From sequence record OQ992561.1: a stretch of 64,000 bases of DNA; one strand, given 5' to 3'. A program made the translations under genes and the position numbers. The notes under the pieces were generated by a model. The model was not told the DNA's origin, ran no database searches, and saw only the letters and a list, made by a program, of their open reading frames with translations. Numbering within the stretch: the stretch's first letter is position 1; the number at the start of each line of letters is the position of its first letter. This document shows positions 2,001 to 45,046 of this stretch, one piece after another.

Positions 2001-2071
2001 ATTATGCATGAAGAATATGAAGCAATTTAATAGTTTAGATTAACCATTCGAAATAAATTTGGAATTAGCAA

Positions 2072-2194
2072 ATGAAAGTTAAAAATAAGCAACAGCCTAA
2101 GTTTGTCAATCTAGCTACTATGCAAGCTGCTTGGCGGCTTAATAACGCAGAACTCAAAGCTAAACGTGAAGCTAAAGAGAAACAAAAAGAGTAA
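2072..2194 (+). CDS. small basic protein (40 aa), not in ORF track
   Basis: MKVKNKQQPKF...KEKQKE*, followed by hairpin terminator. Confidence 0.5.
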   Translation: MKVKNKQQPKFVNLATMQAAWRLNNAELKAKREAKEKQKE

Positions 2195-2210
2195 AACTAT
2201 TTAGTTGCAT

Positions 2211-2239
2211 AAAGAGAGAGGAATTTATCCTCTCTCTTT
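2211..2239 (+). terminator. intrinsic terminator hairpin
   Basis: AAAGAGAGAGGA-ATTTA-TCCTCTCTCTTT. Confidence 0.75.
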
Positions 2240-2380
2240 TTATGCTGTTTTATAATTTGTAGACTACAGGTATATTTCAATATGGAATCTTATTTACACG
2301 TACCATTCTAGATAGAAATATCCTAACTGATATGTTTGTTCTTTATTCTCGGATCACTGAACCTAAAGAGGATTTTTAAG

Positions 2381-29120: not shown

Positions 29121-29501
29121 ATGTGCAAACAACATCGTGTAGTATCTATGAAAGTTACATGCACGCAAGCTCGCTATCCGATCGGTCTGTGCGATCTCGG
29201 ATTTGATAATGCTGCTGATGCTCGGCAATATCTACTAGATGTCGTTGAGTACAATATGGATCGTCTCCACCCACAACATGCTAATACATTCCAGCTACAA
29301 AATCTACAAGACGGGTTCGTAGTATCCTACGATATCGAAAAAGATGGATCCGTTTATCTTCGGTTAACACTGGCGGTTGTAGCTTATCAATCAATCGATC
29401 TTGAGTTGGGGGTTACCGTTAAAGAAAATGAAGGGATCAGTGTTGTAATCAAAAATTGGATCAATGGTGATTATACTGCGGGGAACAAATACTTGCAGTA
29501 A
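29121..29501 (+). CDS. hypothetical protein
   Basis: GAGGA RBS. Confidence 0.75.
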   Translation: MCKQHRVVSMKVTCTQARYPIGLCDLGFDNAADARQYLLDVVEYNMDRLHPQHANTFQLQNLQDGFVVSYDIEKDGSVYLRLTLAVVAYQSIDLELGVTVKENEGISVVIKNWINGDYTAGNKYLQ

Positions 29502-29604
29502 TACCATATGTAAAGAATACCCAAATCGGGATCTCCCGGACTATCTCCCTTCAGCGTTCCCGTCCGCAAATGAAGGTGCCGCCGAGATCCCACCTATTGA
29601 TAAT

Positions 29605-32220: not shown

Positions 32221-32300
32221 TAGTATTTCCTCAGTTTGATTAAATAGATAATTTACAAATGGCAATCCGCCTAGTTACATACTAGATAGCTGTAAGTATT

Positions 32301-32711
32301 TTAATCCGTTACAATGTCTGGATAACGTTCATCAATTAATGATTTTCTATATGCAAACTCACTCACCTCTACTTCTAACTTCTCTTTAGTTGCATATGTG
32401 GTGCCGATTACAATAATTGAATCATTATTAATTGATAACTCTACATCATTATCTTTTCCAAACACTAATTTAAAAACAGTATTTAATTCATCTAATTGAT
32501 TTTGAATGGACACTGCATCATCATGGATTGCCCTAGATGGTTCTTCTAATAAACCTTCTAGTATTTTATAAGACTTTATAAAAAGAGTATCATTAAAATC
32601 TTCTTTTAGCCATGCTAATTCAAGTGTATACAAATCAACTACTCTATTAAGATTTGAAGTAGTTATATCTGTTTTCCATTCATAACCTAGATAGTTAGTT
32701 TCATTACTCAT
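32301..32711 (-). CDS. hypothetical protein
   Basis: AAGGAG RBS. Confidence 0.75.
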   Translation of the reverse strand: MSNETNYLGYEWKTDITTSNLNRVVDLYTLELAWLKEDFNDTLFIKSYKILEGLLEEPSRAIHDDAVSIQNQLDELNTVFKLVFGKDNDVELSINNDSIIVIGTTYATKEKLEVEVSEFAYRKSLIDERYPDIVTD

Positions 32712-32753
32712 TATAAACTCCTTTGATTAATACATATTAAATAATCTGGAGTA

Positions 32754-32930
32754 TTATTTCTTTGTAATACGATAACCAACTGACCATAAATCTACACGGA
32801 CGAAACCTTTTCCATCATGTTGGCCGTATAAACATACACGCAACATTCTATTGTCTGGCTTCATATCAATTCGTGTTATCTCAAATTTATTAGTAATATA
32901 TTCTTGAATGATAAATAATAGATGACTCAT
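32754..32930 (-). CDS. 58-aa hypothetical protein, not in ORF track
   Basis: AGGA RBS; MSHLLFIIQEYITNKF...RITKK*. Confidence 0.55.
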   Translation of the reverse strand: MSHLLFIIQEYITNKFEITRIDMKPDNRMLRVCLYGQHDGKGFVRVDLWSVGYRITKK

Positions 32931-37539: not shown

Positions 37540-38508
37540 CTACACCTCCTTCGGTTTAGTTAGACCTGTATAAACTAGAATTGGCCAAATAAGCATTTTA
37601 TTCCATACGTCATCTGTGGCTACATTAACTACTTCGGTATGTAGTTCTTTTGCTCTTAATGGATATACTGCATCTCTACTTGTCCAATTAATAGCTGTAC
37701 ATTCATTATCAGTCCAATCTGAACTAATTATATATTTTATTTCGGTATCTGGAAATCTGGCACTCAATGGGTCATAGAACATATTTAAACCACTGTTTAA
37801 TGTAAGTCTACCACCTGTTTTGTTACCTGTCTCAGCATCTTCAACACGAGCATACATCTCTGTAATAACTGCCATCATTGACCGCAGTTCACCTGGGAAA
37901 TGCCGCACATTATGGTTTGGATTATTATGATGTTCGGCTGAGGGTATTATTATTTTCCAATCATGTAAACCTATTGTTAATGGAATTGCACCACCATTAA
38001 TTAATGTTTGCATGATTTCACTATCTCTTGGTAGTTCCGACCCAATTGCCAATGGATATGGGAAGGTACCTCTAACAGTACCACCTATTGCGAATTTATG
38101 AAGTTCTGCTACTTCTAGATAGTTACCTGTAATTGGCCCTAAACTAAATGCTTCACGAACCATATTAAACGATGGTAATGACGGTAAGTCCATTGGGAAC
38201 TTTCCAAAATAACCAAAACGTTCATCTCCAAATTGGAAAATAGCTGGACCAGGTCCAGTGTATGGGATAGCTGTAAATGTGAACATATCCGATGCTTCAA
38301 ATTTTTGTGATCCATAGATCAATCTAAAGCGATAATAATATGTTTTTTTATGTTCCACGGTTGTATCTTGATAAGATGTTATCCCTGGTCCAACTGTAGC
38401 AATTAATTCAGCATCTTTAATATTATCGAATTCGTAATCGGCTCGATAAATTTCAGTGGAGTGATATTTTGTTTTATTAGGATCAAGCCATTTAAGTTCA
38501 ATTATCAT
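37540..38508 (-). CDS. virion protein with N-terminal FN3/Ig-like domain
   Basis: TEIYR..SYQD..YYYRF..GPGP..GDE..GYFG. Confidence 0.75.
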   Translation of the reverse strand: MIIELKWLDPNKTKYHSTEIYRADYEFDNIKDAELIATVGPGITSYQDTTVEHKKTYYYRFRLIYGSQKFEASDMFTFTAIPYTGPGPAIFQFGDERFGYFGKFPMDLPSLPSFNMVREAFSLGPITGNYLEVAELHKFAIGGTVRGTFPYPLAIGSELPRDSEIMQTLINGGAIPLTIGLHDWKIIIPSAEHHNNPNHNVRHFPGELRSMMAVITEMYARVEDAETGNKTGGRLTLNSGLNMFYDPLSARFPDTEIKYIISSDWTDNECTAINWTSRDAVYPLRAKELHTEVVNVATDDVWNKMLIWPILVYTGLTKPKEV

Positions 38509-38656
38509 CCGGTATAACCTCTGGTTCAGTCACGGTATTATCTAAATCGATAACCTGGAAACTTGCTGAAGGTGGTAAACTACCTTCGTATATGTCTATA
38601 GCATCCACAACAGGTTTTAAATTAACAAGTGGTGTAAATAATAACGCCTCAAACAT
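38498..38656 (-). CDS. 52-aa peptide MFEALLFTP..., not in ORF track
   Basis: GAGGT RBS; N-terminus resembles MFELLLSP of the 39639-40646 Kelch protein. Confidence 0.6.
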   Translation of the reverse strand: MFEALLFTPLVNLKPVVDAIDIYEGSLPPSASFQVIDLDNTVTEPEVIPDDN

Positions 38657-38780
38657 TTAAATACCTCTTCTAAAAATTACTATAATTTATAGTTAATGAC
38701 ATATGCAAAGCCATTAAAAATGACTTCGCATATGCGTACTATATTTTATTTAGACAACAATGTCATATCATAACAACATA

Positions 38781-38803
38781 AAGCCCTCCATGACGGAGGG
38801 CTT
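38781..38803. terminator. hairpin terminator
   Basis: AAGCCCTCC-ATGAC-GGAGGGCTT. Confidence 0.7.
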
Positions 38804-38823
38804 TTATTTTACCTATTTATATT

Positions 38824-39348
38824 TTAACTAAAACGAACTACAATCACACTAGTGCCAAAAGTATCAGCTACCCACTGATTAAATTCTTTATCAGTAATAC
38901 CTCGTAAATTTAGATTATAAGATGCATTATCTACAAGTATATAGCGGATATCTGAAAGTAAATTTTCATTAAAGTCTTTCTGGATCGTTGATAGTCCAGA
39001 TTTATGGATATAGCTACGTAGTTTAAATGTAGTTAAATATGGAATAATGTTATCTGGTGTTTTGGATAGTTTATCTTGAGCACCACGTCGAATTCTTTCG
39101 TCGGTGAATACTGCCAAACATTCACCAGGGTAGCGTTTTGAAAATTCCATTAATGCTGTAGTACTACCAGATTGACGACCAATAAAAAACCCTACTGTTC
39201 TATGATCACGTATAGTGATATGACTGACATCATTAAGATGATAATGCATCCCATACTTATTCCAATTCTCATTAGTTTTATATATCAATGCATCCAGGAT
39301 AGCCTGGTAATCAACAATAGTTTTTACAAACTGATTTGTGTTATTCAT
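38824..39348 (-). CDS. degenerate P-loop-like protein
   Basis: GRQSGST (Walker-A-like without Lys), YILVDNA (Walker-B-like). Confidence 0.55.
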   Translation of the reverse strand: MNNTNQFVKTIVDYQAILDALIYKTNENWNKYGMHYHLNDVSHITIRDHRTVGFFIGRQSGSTTALMEFSKRYPGECLAVFTDERIRRGAQDKLSKTPDNIIPYLTTFKLRSYIHKSGLSTIQKDFNENLLSDIRYILVDNASYNLNLRGITDKEFNQWVADTFGTSVIVVRFS

Positions 39349-39349
39349 T

Positions 39350-39606
39350 ATAGAAGTTCCTTTATTACAATGTGGTATATAACCTTTATTAAATTAGGTT
39401 ATATACCGGCTATGGAAAGGCCTCGTCACCTTCCCTTCACCTATATTAAATATCAATAGTGGTTATAAAGAACGAGATACACTCATTGACATAATATAGC
39501 CAGGGGTGGCAAACCCCTGGCACTCAGACACACTCTATAATTAAATCTACCACCGAGTGTATTTAGTGGATAGCTTTAGGATTATCTAGATACAGTAATC
39601 CTACAT
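39350..39606 (-). ncRNA. candidate structured ncRNA or long 5' leader
   Basis: TAC-N14-TATGTAG promoter at 39604-39624, no ORF, at least four hairpins. Confidence 0.45.
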
Positions 39607-39638
39607 AATATCATCGCACTAGTATTTTTATCTTTAGT

Positions 39639-40646
39639 TTAATCGAGAACTAATGGGGCTACTTTAACTTGATATATACCAGTTAATAATTGGCTTTTCA
39701 ACATATATGCTCCACCACCAACTGCCGTTTTAGATCCACCAACAATAATCATACTGCCATCTGGACCTTTAGCTATTGACGATATATTAAGGAACCCTAT
39801 GCCAAGTTCTAATGGTTCAGCCCATTTACGACGCCTAATGTTAAAACGTTGTGCAAACATTTTAGTTACGCCATTGACATCAACTGCATTAATATAATTA
39901 AAATATTCTCCATCTACATAACCGTTACCTTGCCAGATTGTTCCTTTATCAGCAGGTATAATCATCCAAGGTGTTTGCTCCCATACTAAGGTAGTTGCAT
40001 TATATCGATAAACTTCAAGATTAGGTATGTTCTTTGTATTATCCCAGCCGCCAAAATGATAAAAGTAACCATTATAGAAGAATAACTGTTGACCTGAACG
40101 AGCACCACCTGAATAATCTTGTCCACTAAGCCATGTCTTACCCGATGGTTTTAACCGCATTGCATTTACCCCAACTGGGTTTACACACAAAATAAGATCA
40201 TTACCATCTGATGCGGATGCTGTACCCCAAAATGGTACAGGCCCACTATATCGTTCAACCCTGCTACCTGTACTTATATCAAAATGTTGTATAAAGTTAG
40301 ATGTCCCCGTACCACCATTACCCGCCGCGTTCCATCCAGTAATACCGCCATAAACAATAAAGTTATTCTTATGTAATGTTCCAAATCCTAAGGATACACC
40401 TGGTAGGAATGTTCCAGAAGATGTTGCACCTGCATCTGCGAATGGTGATATGGTAAAACGTCTGAATACAGTTGCGGCTGTTTGTCCTTCAGTATGATGA
40501 CCAGATCCAACATACAGTGTATTTCCATCCACATATGACATTGTACCAGCTAACGCTACAGGTAGATCACCTAATTTAATAATTTCATTAAATCCAACCA
40601 AGGGTAACTCTTCGCCTATATCTGGTGATAATAGTAATTCAAACAT
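39639..40646 (-). CDS. Kelch-repeat beta-propeller protein, probably virion-associated
   Basis: Repeated YVGSG/VYGG/HFGGW/IVGG blades; GAGAG RBS. Confidence 0.75.
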   Translation of the reverse strand: MFELLLSPDIGEELPLVGFNEIIKLGDLPVALAGTMSYVDGNTLYVGSGHHTEGQTAATVFRRFTISPFADAGATSSGTFLPGVSLGFGTLHKNNFIVYGGITGWNAAGNGGTGTSNFIQHFDISTGSRVERYSGPVPFWGTASASDGNDLILCVNPVGVNAMRLKPSGKTWLSGQDYSGGARSGQQLFFYNGYFYHFGGWDNTKNIPNLEVYRYNATTLVWEQTPWMIIPADKGTIWQGNGYVDGEYFNYINAVDVNGVTKMFAQRFNIRRRKWAEPLELGIGFLNISSIAKGPDGSMIIVGGSKTAVGGGAYMLKSQLLTGIYQVKVAPLVLD

Positions 40647-40700
40647 GAGTGTGCTCTCAAGTAAATCATTTTAATTCATAAGATAACTCATGGCAACATA

Positions 40701-40724
40701 AAAGAGTAGCCGAAGCTACTCTTT
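40701..40724 (-). terminator. terminator of tRNA-Asp/Asn unit
   Basis: Minus strand AAAGAGTAGC-TTCG-GCTACTCTTT. Confidence 0.75.
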
Positions 40725-40730
40725 AGAATA

Positions 40731-40806
<76 letters not shown>

Positions 40807-40812
40807 ATTAAA

Positions 40813-40889
40813 TGGCGCGCCCAAGGGGACTCGAACCCCTGACCACCCGCGTGACAGGCGGGTATTCTAACCAACTGAACTATGAGCGC
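40813..40889 (-). tRNA. trnD: tRNA-Asp(GTC)
   Basis: GCGCTCA...CTGTCAC loop...TTCGA...CCA. Confidence 0.95.
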
Positions 40890-40910
40890 AAACGTATGGA
40901 CATGACTTCC

Positions 40911-40940
40911 TACATAGTATTACATAACCAGTAATATTTT
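40911..40940 (-). promoter_or_regulatory. TAC-N14-TATGTA promoter for tRNA-Asp/Asn
   Basis: Minus strand AAATATTAC-14 nt-TATGTAG. Confidence 0.6.
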
Positions 40941-40942
40941 TA

Positions 40943-41290
40943 TTACGGGCGATCAGTCCAGTGCTTGAAATAGTTACCATCCTTGGGACGATCGTACTTA
41001 GCAAGAATATTTTTAAGTTCTTCGCCGGACAACTTAATACTATCGCCTACTGGGCTATCCAGTTCAGGGCAAGGTTCAGTTTTACGTGTAATGATTAAAT
41101 TATCAGTCCCATCTTTGAAGATAAAGATAAACTGCGTTTCATTAGCACTAATCTTTTTCTTAACGCAATGCTTTACTTCTGGATGTTTCTTGTGGATCGC
41201 TACAAAAGATTCAACAAGAGTTAGCTTTATAAACTCAGGGCTAATAAATGTGAAATATACAGCGCTCTGCGTTGGGGTTAGATGATCCAT
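40943..41290 (-). CDS. hypothetical protein in tRNA cluster
   Basis: GGAG RBS. Confidence 0.7.
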   Translation of the reverse strand: MDHLTPTQSAVYFTFISPEFIKLTLVESFVAIHKKHPEVKHCVKKKISANETQFIFIFKDGTDNLIITRKTEPCPELDSPVGDSIKLSGEELKNILAKYDRPKDGNYFKHWTDRP

Positions 41291-41292
41291 AT

Positions 41293-41598
41293 TTACTCCG
41301 TATGTTTGAGATAGGCTTTAACTGCTTTAAGACCTTTATTAAAGAACATAGCTTCAACATAAGTAATGTTACTTACATCCTCGCCGATAAGTTCCCATTT
41401 GATGCAACGTGTAACAGCGTTGATTGTAATATCTAATCCGTTTGGGAATAGGGTTACTTCATCGGTCAGGTGAATCCAATCGGGAGCCTTCGCTCCATTA
41501 CGTAAACGGGGACTAAAAGTAAGATTATAAAGTGTTTGTAATGGTTGTCTCAATAGTTCTTTTTGTTCTTGATGTTCCATGTATTTTCCTAGAGACAT
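41293..41598 (-). CDS. hypothetical protein in tRNA cluster
   Basis: 101-aa ORF. Confidence 0.65.
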   Translation of the reverse strand: MSLGKYMEHQEQKELLRQPLQTLYNLTFSPRLRNGAKAPDWIHLTDEVTLFPNGLDITINAVTRCIKWELIGEDVSNITYVEAMFFNKGLKAVKAYLKHTE

Positions 41599-41810
41599 TT
41601 AAAAATATAAATAGAATGGTTATCTCTTTCGGTTATCTTTAGAGTATTCTCATTTCGAATAACTCCAAGAGACTTGTATTTATGTTCCAGAATATCCAGA
41701 TGAGAAATACACTGTTCCCTATTTTCAAATAGGATATTACTTTCATTAGTCGAAATGAAACCAAATAATCCAACTTTGATAGATAATACCAACATTATTA
41801 CTGTATTCAT
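41589..41810 (-). CDS. small membrane/secreted protein
   Basis: GAGGA RBS before ATG 41810; hydrophobic N-terminus. Confidence 0.65.
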   Translation of the reverse strand: MNTVIMLVLSIKVGLFGFISTNESNILFENREQCISHLDILEHKYKSLGVIRNENTLKITERDNHSIYIFKCL

Positions 41811-41836
41811 GTTTTCCTCAATGAGACAGTATAAAA

Positions 41837-41854
41837 CCTCCCCCAAGTGGGAGG
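41837..41854 (-). terminator. hairpin downstream of tRNA-Ile2
   Basis: CCTCCC-n6-GGGAGG then TTTTAT on minus strand. Confidence 0.65.
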
Positions 41855-41862
41855 CTAGTATA

Positions 41863-41939
41863 TGGTGGGCCCAGCAGGACTTGAACCTGCGACCAAGCGA
41901 TTATGAGTCGCCTGCTCTAACCAACTGAGCTATAGGCCC
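41863..41939 (-). tRNA. trnI: tRNA-Ile2(CAT) (lysidine-type; often labelled Met)
   Basis: GGGCCTATAGCTCAG...GGCGACTCATAATCGCTTGGTCGC...; anticodon arm matches the enterobacterial ileX type as recalled. Confidence 0.8.
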
Positions 41940-41946
41940 TTTTTAT

Positions 41947-42240
41947 TTATTCTGGTAAGAATGTTCCATCTTTTTGACGGACTAATACACCTGACCATTT
42001 GAATTTATTTGTATCACTAGCAGGGCACTCTCTAATTACATTGGTTCTAAATGTGCCATGTGGATAGGTTACAGTGAATGTAATATGGTTATTACAAACA
42101 TGTAATACAGAAGACTTTGCTTCTGTTAGATAGTGTAAGCCTTGAGCTAATTGAATATTAGTTAATTCAGGGTCACTAAGAATAGCGTAAAGAGCTGTTC
42201 CTATAATTTGATGTTCCCATGATATCCATTTATTATCCAT
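41947..42240 (-). CDS. hypothetical protein between tRNAs
   Basis: 97-aa ORF. Confidence 0.65.
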   Translation of the reverse strand: MDNKWISWEHQIIGTALYAILSDPELTNIQLAQGLHYLTEAKSSVLHVCNNHITFTVTYPHGTFRTNVIRECPASDTNKFKWSGVLVRQKDGTFLPE

Positions 42241-42261
42241 CCTATTTACCTATTATTAAAA

Positions 42262-42337
42262 TGGTCGGAGTGGGGAGACTCGAACTCCCGACATCCTGCT
42301 CCCAAAGCAGGCGCGCTACCAACTGCGCTACACTCCG
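42262..42337 (-). tRNA. trnP: tRNA-Pro(TGG)
   Basis: CGGAGTG...TTTGGGA loop...TTCGA...CCA. Confidence 0.95.
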
Positions 42338-42346
42338 TATTTAAAT

Positions 42347-42431
42347 TGGTGCCCGAAGTCGGATTCGAACCGACAAGACCGTAGCCGGAAGATTTTAAGT
42401 CTTCTGTGTTTACCAATTTCACCATTCGGGC
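42347..42431 (-). tRNA. trnL: tRNA-Leu(TAA)
   Basis: GCCCGAA...CTTAAAA loop, long variable arm, CCA. Confidence 0.95.
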
Positions 42432-42443
42432 ATTGTGCTTCAA

Positions 42444-42472
42444 TACATAACATGTAATGCTAGGTATTTTAT
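42444..42472 (-). promoter_or_regulatory. TAC-N14-TATGTA promoter for tRNA-Leu/Pro/Ile2
   Basis: Minus strand AAAAATAC-14 nt-TATGTAT. Confidence 0.6.
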
Positions 42473-42489
42473 TACAACTTATTTTAAAT

Positions 42490-42942
42490 TCAACGTGGCC
42501 ATTGTAAAGAAGTTATCTTATTACCATTAATGTAGACATCGGTCACTTCGCACCAATCATTAATTCTGTGTTCAATAATTGGAACATCATTTCGGCCAGC
42601 CACTCCAATCATATTCCATTTAACATAAATATTCATTAGATCAATTGTTAATTTCTCTTTTATGAGTTTAGGAGAAATTAATTTAATATTATTAATGTTA
42701 AAGAAGTAATTATTAACTTCTTCTAAATATTCATTAGTATTAGTAGTACTAACTTTGCCTTCATGTTCAAGTGAGGATGGTTTATTCTGATTTACAATAT
42801 TGCTCACTAGACTTCTTAAAACGGCACTTGCCCTACCAGCTTCACGTCTTTTATATTTATCATAGTCTTTTACATTAGCTGCAATTTTATCAAATTCTTT
42901 TTGGGCATAGATTAACCCTGGTAAAAGTTCATTCTTAATCAT
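42490..42942 (-). CDS. hypothetical protein
   Basis: 150-aa ORF. Confidence 0.7.
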   Translation of the reverse strand: MIKNELLPGLIYAQKEFDKIAANVKDYDKYKRREAGRASAVLRSLVSNIVNQNKPSSLEHEGKVSTTNTNEYLEEVNNYFFNINNIKLISPKLIKEKLTIDLMNIYVKWNMIGVAGRNDVPIIEHRINDWCEVTDVYINGNKITSLQWPR

Positions 42943-42997
42943 TTTATAATTACTCTATGTTATTTGTACATATTTTAACATACTCACGTAAAAACAA

Positions 42998-43142
42998 AAT
43001 ATAAAGCCTCCCCGAAGGGAGGCGATATATCGTCATTAATGCCCAGCAAAGAGTTTTACTCTCTGGGAGCCAGTTGGAAGGGGGACTGGCTCCGATTTAT
43101 TATGACTAATGTAGAAACGAGGGGGAGGGATCATTTCTACAT
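42998..43142 (-). ncRNA. candidate ~145-nt sRNA with C-rich loops
   Basis: Own TAC-N14-TATGTAG promoter, three hairpins, UUCG terminator at 43006-43023 with U-tract on minus strand, no ORF. Confidence 0.55.
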
Positions 43143-43162
43143 ATCATTACATACTCAGTAAG

Positions 43163-45046
43163 TTATTCTTCAATACCAATGACCGTATTGCGTTCATTGG
43201 TGTTCTCTACGGTTGAACCACTTGGGAAGCTACTGACAGATGCTTGCATTAGTTTCAACATGTCGATAGCAAATACTCGATATGTAGATTCAACCTTAGC
43301 GTCGTCGTACGATGCATGAATGTTAAGAATGGCATTATCGACCCTTTTAGCCAGCAGATATACATCCTCAAGAGCATCTTTATCTTTAATAGTGGATAGC
43401 TTATGTTTGTAGATATCCCCATTGACAGATAGGTCAGGATACTGGGCTACCCAAGTGTCCGCAATAGTCTTAGTGTTGTTAGACAGAACGTCAATGATAA
43501 CGTTAGCTGCTTCCACAATACCGGTAGCATCAAGCAACTTAATCTTAGCACCAGCATTATCTGGCCATTTGGGTTCTTGGAAGTTTGTCTTTACATTGGG
43601 TTTCCATTCAGCCAGAAGAGTAGCGACTTTCTTAGGGTCTTGCCAATCATTCCCTTTGAACAGATTAACCACGGGGGCTAGTATCTTACTGTTCTCATCC
43701 AGAACTTTCTGGTTGTGACGATCAGCTTTAGCTACAGCATTAGTGATATTGGCTTTTGCGGTCTTAGGATCATTAGACGCGAACGTCTCGTAACTCGATA
43801 CTTTTACTTCGCCGGTTTTAAGCTTTGCTTCTGCCACCCATTTGGCATCACCATAGGTACTTTTCAGTGTAGCAATAGCTTTCTTCTTTTTATCAAGATT
43901 GATCTCAGGGCCAGAGTCGAAGATACTCTTAATGGTGTCGATAAGACCTTCATTTGAGACTTGTATAAAGTCGGGAGTATTAATGATGGACTTCTCTACA
44001 TACCCGCCACGAATAACTCGATTTATAAAACCATTAAGACCACTACCGGTTTCGGCCATATCTTTCATGATTTCTATATTCGTTTCACCAGCACTTTGGG
44101 CATTGTATAAATAATAAGAGCCATCTTTAAATTTTAATATAATCCAGTCATCCCCAGTTAGATATGAATCAATATTACTATCATTCATACTTTGATATTT
44201 AATGAATTCTGGATTAGTACTTAATACTTCTTCAATGAATTCTTCTAATGCCGCAGAATTATTAATAGCATCAACCGGTGGAATTTCACCATCAATGGGT
44301 TCAGTAGTTGGACCAGTAACAATGGCAGGTAACGGATCCTCCTCTACAATAACAGTTTCTTCCACTGGTAGAGCACCGCAAGATAAATCAATTAGTTTAT
44401 TAAAACTACTAATGATCTCACCAAGTGCTACAAGAACTGCTGGCTGTTCAACTTGTTCAACTTTAGCAATACCAGTTTCTGTAAATTCTTCAGTAATTCG
44501 GTTATAGACTTCCACTAATTGATTAGTAAGCTCTGCTACTTTTGGCAGAGTCTGCTTAGACAGAGGTTCAACTACAGTTGTATCTGCTTCAACAAAAATA
44601 GAGTCATCTTCTTCTAAACGGCTAGTATTAGCTGAGCCAGCTGTGAAGTTATAAGGCATATCTTGAATTACTTCATTAATTTCAGATGCCTCCATATCTT
44701 CATTTAGACGACCACTATAAGTACGCATCATACCTTCTGCTTCTTTAATAGTGGAATGCGCCAAGCGTCCCCAATCACCACGCATAATACCGCGCTCGGT
44801 AAGACCGCGTGCAGCTGAACCAAGATCAATAGGTTCTTCAATAAATGATTGTTCTTCAACCCACTCCTCATTACTGTAACATTCTTTTAGAATGGTTTTA
44901 AATTTAGTACTAAAGGGTTGTAGAATCTTTTTATCTACTTGTTCAACATTTGTTTTAAAGTGTTCTAGACTTGGTGTAGCTTTTGAAGATACTTTTTCAG
45001 TACCGCTATATAGCGTACGGTTTAGGAAGTTTAGCATTTTATTCAT
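43163..45046 (-). CDS. inner-head/ejection protein paralog (gp303-like) with KTSC-like middle domain
   Basis: Two L..xY.N/D..WV domains, S-x-E head-protease sites (PSLE, VSNE-GL), acidic linker. Confidence 0.65.
   Translation of the reverse strand: MNKMLNFLNRTLYSGTEKVSSKATPSLEHFKTNVEQVDKKILQPFSTKFKTILKECYSNEEWVEEQSFIEEPIDLGSAARGLTERGIMRGDWGRLAHSTIKEAEGMMRTYSGRLNEDMEASEINEVIQDMPYNFTAGSANTSRLEEDDSIFVEADTTVVEPLSKQTLPKVAELTNQLVEVYNRITEEFTETGIAKVEQVEQPAVLVALGEIISSFNKLIDLSCGALPVEETVIVEEDPLPAIVTGPTTEPIDGEIPPVDAINNSAALEEFIEEVLSTNPEFIKYQSMNDSNIDSYLTGDDWIILKFKDGSYYLYNAQSAGETNIEIMKDMAETGSGLNGFINRVIRGGYVEKSIINTPDFIQVSNEGLIDTIKSIFDSGPEINLDKKKKAIATLKSTYGDAKWVAEAKLKTGEVKVSSYETFASNDPKTAKANITNAVAKADRHNQKVLDENSKILAPVVNLFKGNDWQDPKKVATLLAEWKPNVKTNFQEPKWPDNAGAKIKLLDATGIVEAANVIIDVLSNNTKTIADTWVAQYPDLSVNGDIYKHKLSTIKDKDALEDVYLLAKRVDNAILNIHASYDDAKVESTYRVFAIDMLKLMQASVSSFPSGSTVENTNERNTVIGIEE

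Follow-up and report, generated by a model that had tools for sequence, protein, structure and literature searches.

The window analysed here, a stretch of 64,000 nucleotides from sequence record OQ992561.1, is assigned by sequence comparison to a phiKZ-like jumbo Pseudomonas phage of the ANB1/OMKO1/KTN4 clade of the genus. Over positions 38800–40700, the window is 100% identical to ANB1 across the stretch compared, 99.4% identical to OMKO1, about 95% identical to KTN4 and fnug, and about 82% identical to phiKZ. In KEN49 (PP456877) and Wadjak 2 (OP310984), the match to the same interval falls into two pieces spanning approximately 3 kb, not 1.9 kb, which implies that approximately 1.1 kb is inserted at some point within the gp298–gp297 region. 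The region under study (39349–39638, minus strand) is the spacer separating the orthologues of PHIKZ298 and PHIKZ297, both of which lie on the same strand. The order PHIKZ298 to PHIKZ297 and the strand are identical in phiKZ and the window, and the surrounding block is rich in tRNA genes. In the direction of transcription, the locus contains the following features.

39639–40646, minus strand: orthologue of PHIKZ298, the gene upstream, encoding a virion structural protein with a Kelch-like stretch.
39604–39632, minus strand: middle-class promoter, orthologue of phiKZ P138, with an A-rich tract, TACT at 39624–39621 and TATG at 39607–39604, located by pattern matches and alignment to phiKZ.
39493–39603, minus strand: small RNA, orthologue of phiKZ 270595–270485, 111 nt, composed of SL1, a linker, SL2 and SL3.
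39577–39603, minus strand: SL1, a 5'-terminal hairpin that begins with the first transcribed base and includes two pairs with compensatory changes.
39563–39576, minus strand: unpaired linker AAGCUAUCCACUAA, nearly invariant in the genus, with a predicted unpaired probability of approximately 0.9 over most of its length.
39528–39562, minus strand: SL2, an 8-bp outer stem and a weak 5-bp inner stem, with three one-sided changes that all keep the pair.
39499–39521, minus strand: SL3, the terminator hairpin GCCAGGGGU/ACCCCUGGC (orthologue of T126), 9 bp including 7 G-C pairs, with the tail UAUAUU reaching 39493, located by a terminator scan.
39414–39435, minus strand: SL4, in the read-through leader, a 7-bp GGGAAGG/CCUUUCC stem conserved with PhiPA3, with one compensatory pair.
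39374–39407, minus strand: SL5, a 12-bp hairpin just before the ribosome-binding region, whose base GGYAU/AURYY is kept and whose upper stem differs in each clade.
39357–39372, minus strand: the CAUUGUAAUA box (39372–39363) followed by the Shine-Dalgarno sequence AGGA (39361–39358), invariant in seven Phikzvirus variants and PhiPA3.
38824–39348, minus strand: orthologue of PHIKZ297, the gene served by the leader, encoding a 174-aa protein of unknown function (PHROG 2586).

The gp297 orthologue carries a Walker-A-like sequence, GRQSGST, without the lysine, and a Walker-B-like sequence, LVDNA. The structure model of gp297 has a pLDDT of 64, and the Foldseek matches are weak (E about 5e-3); all of these weak matches are P-loop or RecA-like proteins, including helicases, SRP GTPases, and RAD51 paralogues. 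Sequence searches for its function against Pfam and the PDB returned no match, and only unnamed viral clusters were found in the protein atlas. Directly past gp297 is a canonical phiKZ-type terminator (38780–38804, minus strand); its stem of 11 bp precedes AUGUUGUUAU, and its position fits the gp297 transcript of approximately 830 nt in phiKZ.

The initial annotation had described the spacer as a structured, ORF-less segment behind a tRNA-type promoter. The element TAC-N14-TATG is indeed present at 39624–39604 on the minus strand, and its spacing is shared with the promoters of tRNA-Thr (33168–33148), tRNA-Asp/Asn (40933–40913), and tRNA-Leu/Pro (42466–42446). The bare TAC-N14-TATG pattern is not enriched in the window (21 matches vs 14.8 expected), while the extended pattern WAWTAC-N14-TATGTA occurs 7 times vs 0.21 expected; the sequences upstream of these promoters have more in common than the bare pattern. 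Three of the seven extended matches are situated away from tRNA genes (29487–29512 on the plus strand, and 32276–32301 and 32731–32756 on the minus strand) and are probably the promoters of protein-coding units, and a near-match is also located ahead of the PHIKZ302 orthologue. Because of these matches, the promoter belongs to a general class, and the label tRNA-type has to give way to the middle class of phiKZ promoters used by the non-virion RNA polymerase. The published phiKZ middle promoter consists of an A-rich run and then TACT approximately 20–22 nt before the start site. The window promoter fits this motif in the spacing of TACT, the preceding A-rich run, and the start at TATG, and the motif is fully conserved between the window and phiKZ. 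In phiKZ, the orthologous promoter P138 (start site 270595) and the tRNA promoters P137, P140, and P141 are all classed as middle (Putzeys 2024, PMC10914365). Base-by-base alignment to phiKZ places the start site at the U after TATG, position 39603 on the minus strand.

An RNA from this spacer has already been described in phiKZ. By Grad-seq, an RNA of approximately 100 nt was detected from the PHIKZ298–PHIKZ297 spacer and confirmed by northern blot. Present in large amounts, it was recovered from light fractions apart from the ribosomes, and it was read as derived from a 3'UTR, since the start site was then unknown (Gerovac 2021, PMC8545117). Subsequently, ONT-cappable-seq assigned it a start site of its own and led to its re-annotation at 270595–270485 (minus strand), the terminator T126 having its termination site at 270485. 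Transcription unit TU214 runs from P138 to T126 over 110 nt and contains no gene, while TU213 and TU212 read through PHIKZ297 and beyond; northern bands of 110, 830, and 1100 nt were observed, and an origin by processing of a longer mRNA was also allowed (Putzeys 2024, PMC10914365). A 2026 review mentions only "potential roles", with no function assigned to any non-coding RNA of a phiKZ-type phage.

In a BLAST alignment, phiKZ 270485–270625 matches window positions 39493–39633 with 84% identity. Within the small RNA itself, 93 of the 111 positions are identical to phiKZ (84%) without any insertion or deletion, and the 18 substitutions are mostly located in SL1 and the loops. The window RNA and the phiKZ RNA, named 3'UTR_PHIKZ298 / 5'UTR_PHIKZ297, share the spacer, the flanking genes, the middle promoter, the length of 111 nt, and the SL1–SL2–SL3 layout. 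There are also differences: the window belongs to another clade of the genus, the sequence past the terminator and gp297 are far more diverged, and the RNA is a predicted one here. The region is very probably the ANB1/OMKO1-type copy of the leader and small RNA known from phiKZ. Hence, the proposal of a novel non-coding RNA or regulatory leader holds insofar as the segment is structured, non-coding, and doubles as the leader of gp297, but its novelty is lost to the published phiKZ orthologue.

The absence of a credible ORF, including a small conserved one that could explain the region, is borne out. No ORF of at least 20 aa with a plausible start was found in the spacer. On the minus strand, there are only three frames of 20–25 aa with TTG or GTG starts, and on the plus strand there is one frame of 95 aa with a TTG start. 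These four frames are what could be offered for a small protein encoded in the region; however, all of them lack both an ATG start and a Shine-Dalgarno sequence, those on the minus strand run across the terminator or a segment deleted in the phiKZ clade, and a small ORF with a strong Shine-Dalgarno was likewise not found in the phiKZ spacer RNA (Gerovac 2021, PMC8545117). A protein-coding role for the region is thus scarcely credible.

The spacer is predicted to fold far more stably than shuffled sequences, with z = -5.7 for the whole spacer, z = -4.0 for 39493–39603, and z = -4.1 for 39349–39492. All four hairpins named in the initial annotation exist, namely SL1, GCCAGGGGU/ACCCCUGGC, GGGAAGG/CCUUUCC, and the 12-bp stem. 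The pair probabilities in the terminator range from 0.88 to 1.0. Compared with the published phiKZ terminator motif, a GC stem-loop followed by TTAT, the features of SL3 are mixed: 7 of its 9 bp are G-C and the tail TATATTATGT contains TTAT, but the order of its arms is G then C, unlike the motif, and the tail is UAUAUU with no U run; T126 was not called an intrinsic terminator by ARNold (Putzeys 2024 supplement, PMC10914365). Since SL3 lies directly downstream of the gp298 orthologue, it can end the gp298 mRNA too. The proposed segment of 255 nt is correct as the distance from 39603 to 39349, the base before the AUG, but the main product would be 111 nt long, ended by the GC-rich hairpin equivalent to phiKZ T126. 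As had been suggested for checking, Rfam was searched, and the small RNA matched no family with the E threshold relaxed to 10; over 38000–43000 at the same threshold, only tRNAs and chance-level matches were returned, the spacer giving only STnc460 (E = 2.9). A covariance model of the small RNA has a single match in the window, at its own site, with 134.8 bits.

Other phiKZ RNAs formed in 5'UTRs by premature termination, such as the 141-nt RNA of PHIKZ302 and the 71-nt RNA of PHIKZ221 (Putzeys 2024, PMC10914365), share with this RNA the middle-type promoter, the short structured transcript, the GC-rich hairpin at the end, and the coexistence of short and read-through classes. They differ in having no sequence relationship with it, the covariance model finding no second copy in the window. 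The orthologue of the 141-nt RNA upstream of PHIKZ302 is situated at 42998–43165 of the window on the minus strand, with TAC-N14-TATGTAG at 43160–43140, a 5' hairpin, and the terminator GCCUCCC-UUCG-GGGAGGC followed by a U-rich tail. In contrast to the small RNA of the gp298–gp297 spacer, with its UAUAUU tail and a T126 that ARNold does not call intrinsic, the PHIKZ302-linked RNA thus possesses a canonical phiKZ terminator with a U-rich tail.

The small RNA is exactly 111 nt long and indel-free in all seven distinct variants collected, and 180 of 180 stem cells are paired across six variants. Two pairs of SL1 have changed in a compensatory manner, and five further stem changes affect one side only, without loss of pairing. 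Among 500 column shuffles, only 2 match this pairing and covariation, and sliding the partner columns lowers pairing to 32–49%. Variable columns are approximately twice as frequent at unpaired as at paired positions. Meanwhile, the identity of the small RNA to phiKZ is 84%, compared with 78% at the four-fold degenerate sites of gp298, and because the former is little above the latter neutral-type sites, purifying selection on the sequence is modest. Pairing is constrained more than sequence. The covariation evidence rests on few clades because few wider homologues were found: searches with the exact terminator pattern and with gp297 in IMG/VR returned PA7 and PhiPA3 only, and scanning of metagenomes added a single distant locus and a single fragment.

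The DNA identity to phiKZ is approximately 92–95% across gp298 and drops to approximately 55–70% from just past the terminator through gp297. At the protein level, gp297 is about 63% identical to its phiKZ counterpart (64% in the pairwise alignment and 62.6% by tblastn), with identity at the four-fold sites of approximately 40%, which is saturated. By this measure, the small RNA evolves with gp298, while the rest of the leader, as one module with gp297, varies far more. Comparison of 38824–39500 with phiKZ shows a sharp mosaic boundary at the terminator, which suggests that the gp297 module has been exchanged between lineages.

That the small RNA diverges at approximately the rate of gp298, unlike the downstream sequence, speaks for its release by cleavage from the gp298 mRNA 3' end in place of initiation at its own promoter. 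Such an origin was the first published reading (Gerovac 2021, PMC8545117), and it is also in line with the position of the terminator downstream of gp298 and with the 1100-nt band in phiKZ. However, ONT-cappable-seq in phiKZ identified a primary start site with the middle motif, from which TU214 extends to T126, and the promoter motif is fully conserved in the window. Furthermore, the same promoter and 5' hairpin are situated ahead of gp297 homologues even where gp298 is not upstream, as in PhiPA3 and 201phi2-1. Processing as the sole source is therefore improbable compared with initiation at the middle promoter, and processing of the gp298 mRNA may add some molecules to the small RNA pool.

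Beyond the genus, gp297 homologues are present in PhiPA3, Psa21, Phabio, 201phi2-1, Viktualia, EL, and one metagenome contig. The same promoter type with an immediate 5' hairpin is located ahead of the gp297 homologues of PhiPA3, 201phi2-1, Viktualia, Psa21, and the unclassified metagenome contig; these hairpins begin at the start site, and the stem sequence is different in each. Promoter and 5' hairpin therefore belong to gp297, also where gp298 is not upstream. The covariance model of the small RNA finds no match in PhiPA3, PA1C, phiHQ, Psa21, Phabio, 201phi2-1, Viktualia, EL, or the metagenome locus, and SL2 and the terminator look like an addition at the genus level. In PA1C, a deletion extends from SL1 through most of gp297, and in phiHQ the whole block of promoter, RNA, and gp297 is gone. 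The PA1C-type phages (approximately 300 kb) keep gp298 and have lost the small RNA and gp297. What is left at the PA1C locus (1296–1702) is a mutated promoter, one half of SL1, and the final 43 codons of gp297, and in the phiHQ locus (1312–1505) the stop region of gp298 is joined directly to the next tRNA-Asn promoter. From these genomes, the promoter–RNA–gp297 module is dispensable, and its loss occurs as a unit.

The terminator is situated between the promoter and the start codon, and gp297 needs read-through, a layout also found in bacterial attenuators and riboswitch leaders. A terminator within a leader, together with two transcript classes, is the arrangement of conditional termination, and in such a scheme AUACACUC would pair with either GAGUGUGU or GAGUGUAU, or another antiterminator would form, so that a signal decides between termination and read-through. 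Both partners of AUACACUC occur in the window phage, and GGUGGUAG at the apex of SL2 can pair with UUGCCACC of the terminator. However, GAGUGUAU is located at 39484–39477, and because this is downstream of the termination site, it is no competitor before termination. In addition, GAGUGUAU reads AGGUGGUU in T2P, its 22-nt segment is missing from the phiKZ clade, and Rfam holds no match to the small RNA up to E 10. The antiterminator pairing of GGUGGUAG with UUGCCACC (the terminator loop and 3' arm) was considered and rejected, with an energy of -26.1 kcal/mol vs -39.6 kcal/mol for the minimum free energy structure, or 13.5 kcal/mol worse. In this leader, neither conserved mutually exclusive pairings that include the terminator nor any resemblance to known aptamer or leader families was found. 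Compared with bacterial attenuators, no conserved alternative pairing, leader peptide, or known aptamer was found here, and transcription is carried out by the phage's own multisubunit polymerase inside the phage nucleus. Signal-dependent switching is consequently very unlikely, and the switch-like alternative pairing of the initial annotation is rejected.

Two long-range helices are discarded as well. The GCUAU/AUAGC closing helix put forward in the initial annotation is present in the window phage but broken in T2P and the phiKZ clade. The GCGAUG/CAUUGU helix given by RNAalifold uses bases before the start site and never varies.

Past the terminator, alignment with PhiPA3 is good over the final 100 nt of the leader, with SL4, the base of SL5, the box, and the Shine-Dalgarno region being kept. 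The upper stem of SL5 folds in every clade despite its differing sequence. In this 3' module, 87% of the cells are paired, both sides have changed in six pairs, and none of 500 shuffles reaches the covariation score, while slid controls give 39–50% pairing; the alignment was fitted to a covariance model of the same part and is biased towards structure. The CAUUGUAAUA box is not a repeated motif and is not enriched in the window. The box as a second promoter and SL5 as a terminator were both considered and set aside: phiKZ lists no start or termination site in 270485–269756, so the 3' leader contains neither there, and the box is not enriched. In PhiPA3, SL5 resembles a canonical phiKZ-type terminator and is followed by UUUAUGUUG. 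The annotated hypothetical CDS 368 of PhiPA3 (locus 2064–2285, plus strand) lies antisense to the leader of the gp297 homologue, gene 367, and may be a mis-call because the promoter, hairpins, and box are conserved on the opposite strand. We tentatively regard SL4, SL5, and the CAUUGUAAUA box (39435–39357) as a possible separate, undescribed cis element of gp297, common to Phikzvirus and PhiPA3 (Miltoncavirus). Such a module could be bound as an operator by a phage protein, gp297 being one candidate, or could determine translation or stability after read-through.

Taken with the phiKZ transcripts, these features suggest the following course of events. The non-virion RNA polymerase would start at approximately 39603 from the middle promoter, and the transcript would open with the 5' hairpin. 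It would then cross the linker and SL2 and mostly stop at SL3, with a 3' end at approximately 39493, yielding a stable RNA of 111 nt with a hairpin at each end. Terminal stem-loops protect the ends of RNAs. A minority of polymerases would continue past SL3, transcribing SL4, SL5, and then the box before reaching the gp297 ribosome-binding site, and because of this fraction, the 255 nt would also be an attenuated 5' leader of gp297. Simultaneously, the same terminator may end the late gp298 mRNA. By analogy, the same transcripts as in phiKZ are presumably made in the window phage; four public RNA runs, in which the phage itself is absent, contain zero reads from the locus.

Whether the 111-nt RNA has a target of its own, acting in trans by base-pairing through the linker or by binding a protein, is a separate matter and is compatible with the proposed biogenesis. 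The abundance of the phiKZ RNA in light fractions away from ribosomes, the predicted unpaired and nearly invariant linker, and the length fixed at 111 nt would be expected of such an RNA. However, matches to the linker complement are no commoner in the window than expected (7 vs 8.8), and the best duplex of the linker with 140 translation-start regions of the window has -13.7 kcal/mol, compared with a mean best of -14.2 kcal/mol for shuffled seeds. In addition, conservation is barely above neutral, and the module is absent from PA1C and phiHQ. We consider a trans-acting role rather doubtful. The fixed length and stems, the promoter and 5' hairpin that accompany gp297 across five genera, and the joint loss in PA1C-type phages point to a job tied to gp297 expression and not to a general host-directed regulator. 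The main role would accordingly be in cis, setting or limiting the gp297 mRNA and insulating gp297 from upstream transcription; the small RNA itself could largely be a side effect of having a promoter ahead of the terminator of gp298.

Only a handful of non-coding RNAs are known from phages, and the present analysis adds comparative context to a published candidate. Since the OMKO1 copy is near-identical to that of the window (99.4% across the compared stretch), work on phiKZ should transfer directly. For the 3' leader module, no description was found, and this module is the sole part of the finding that may be new.
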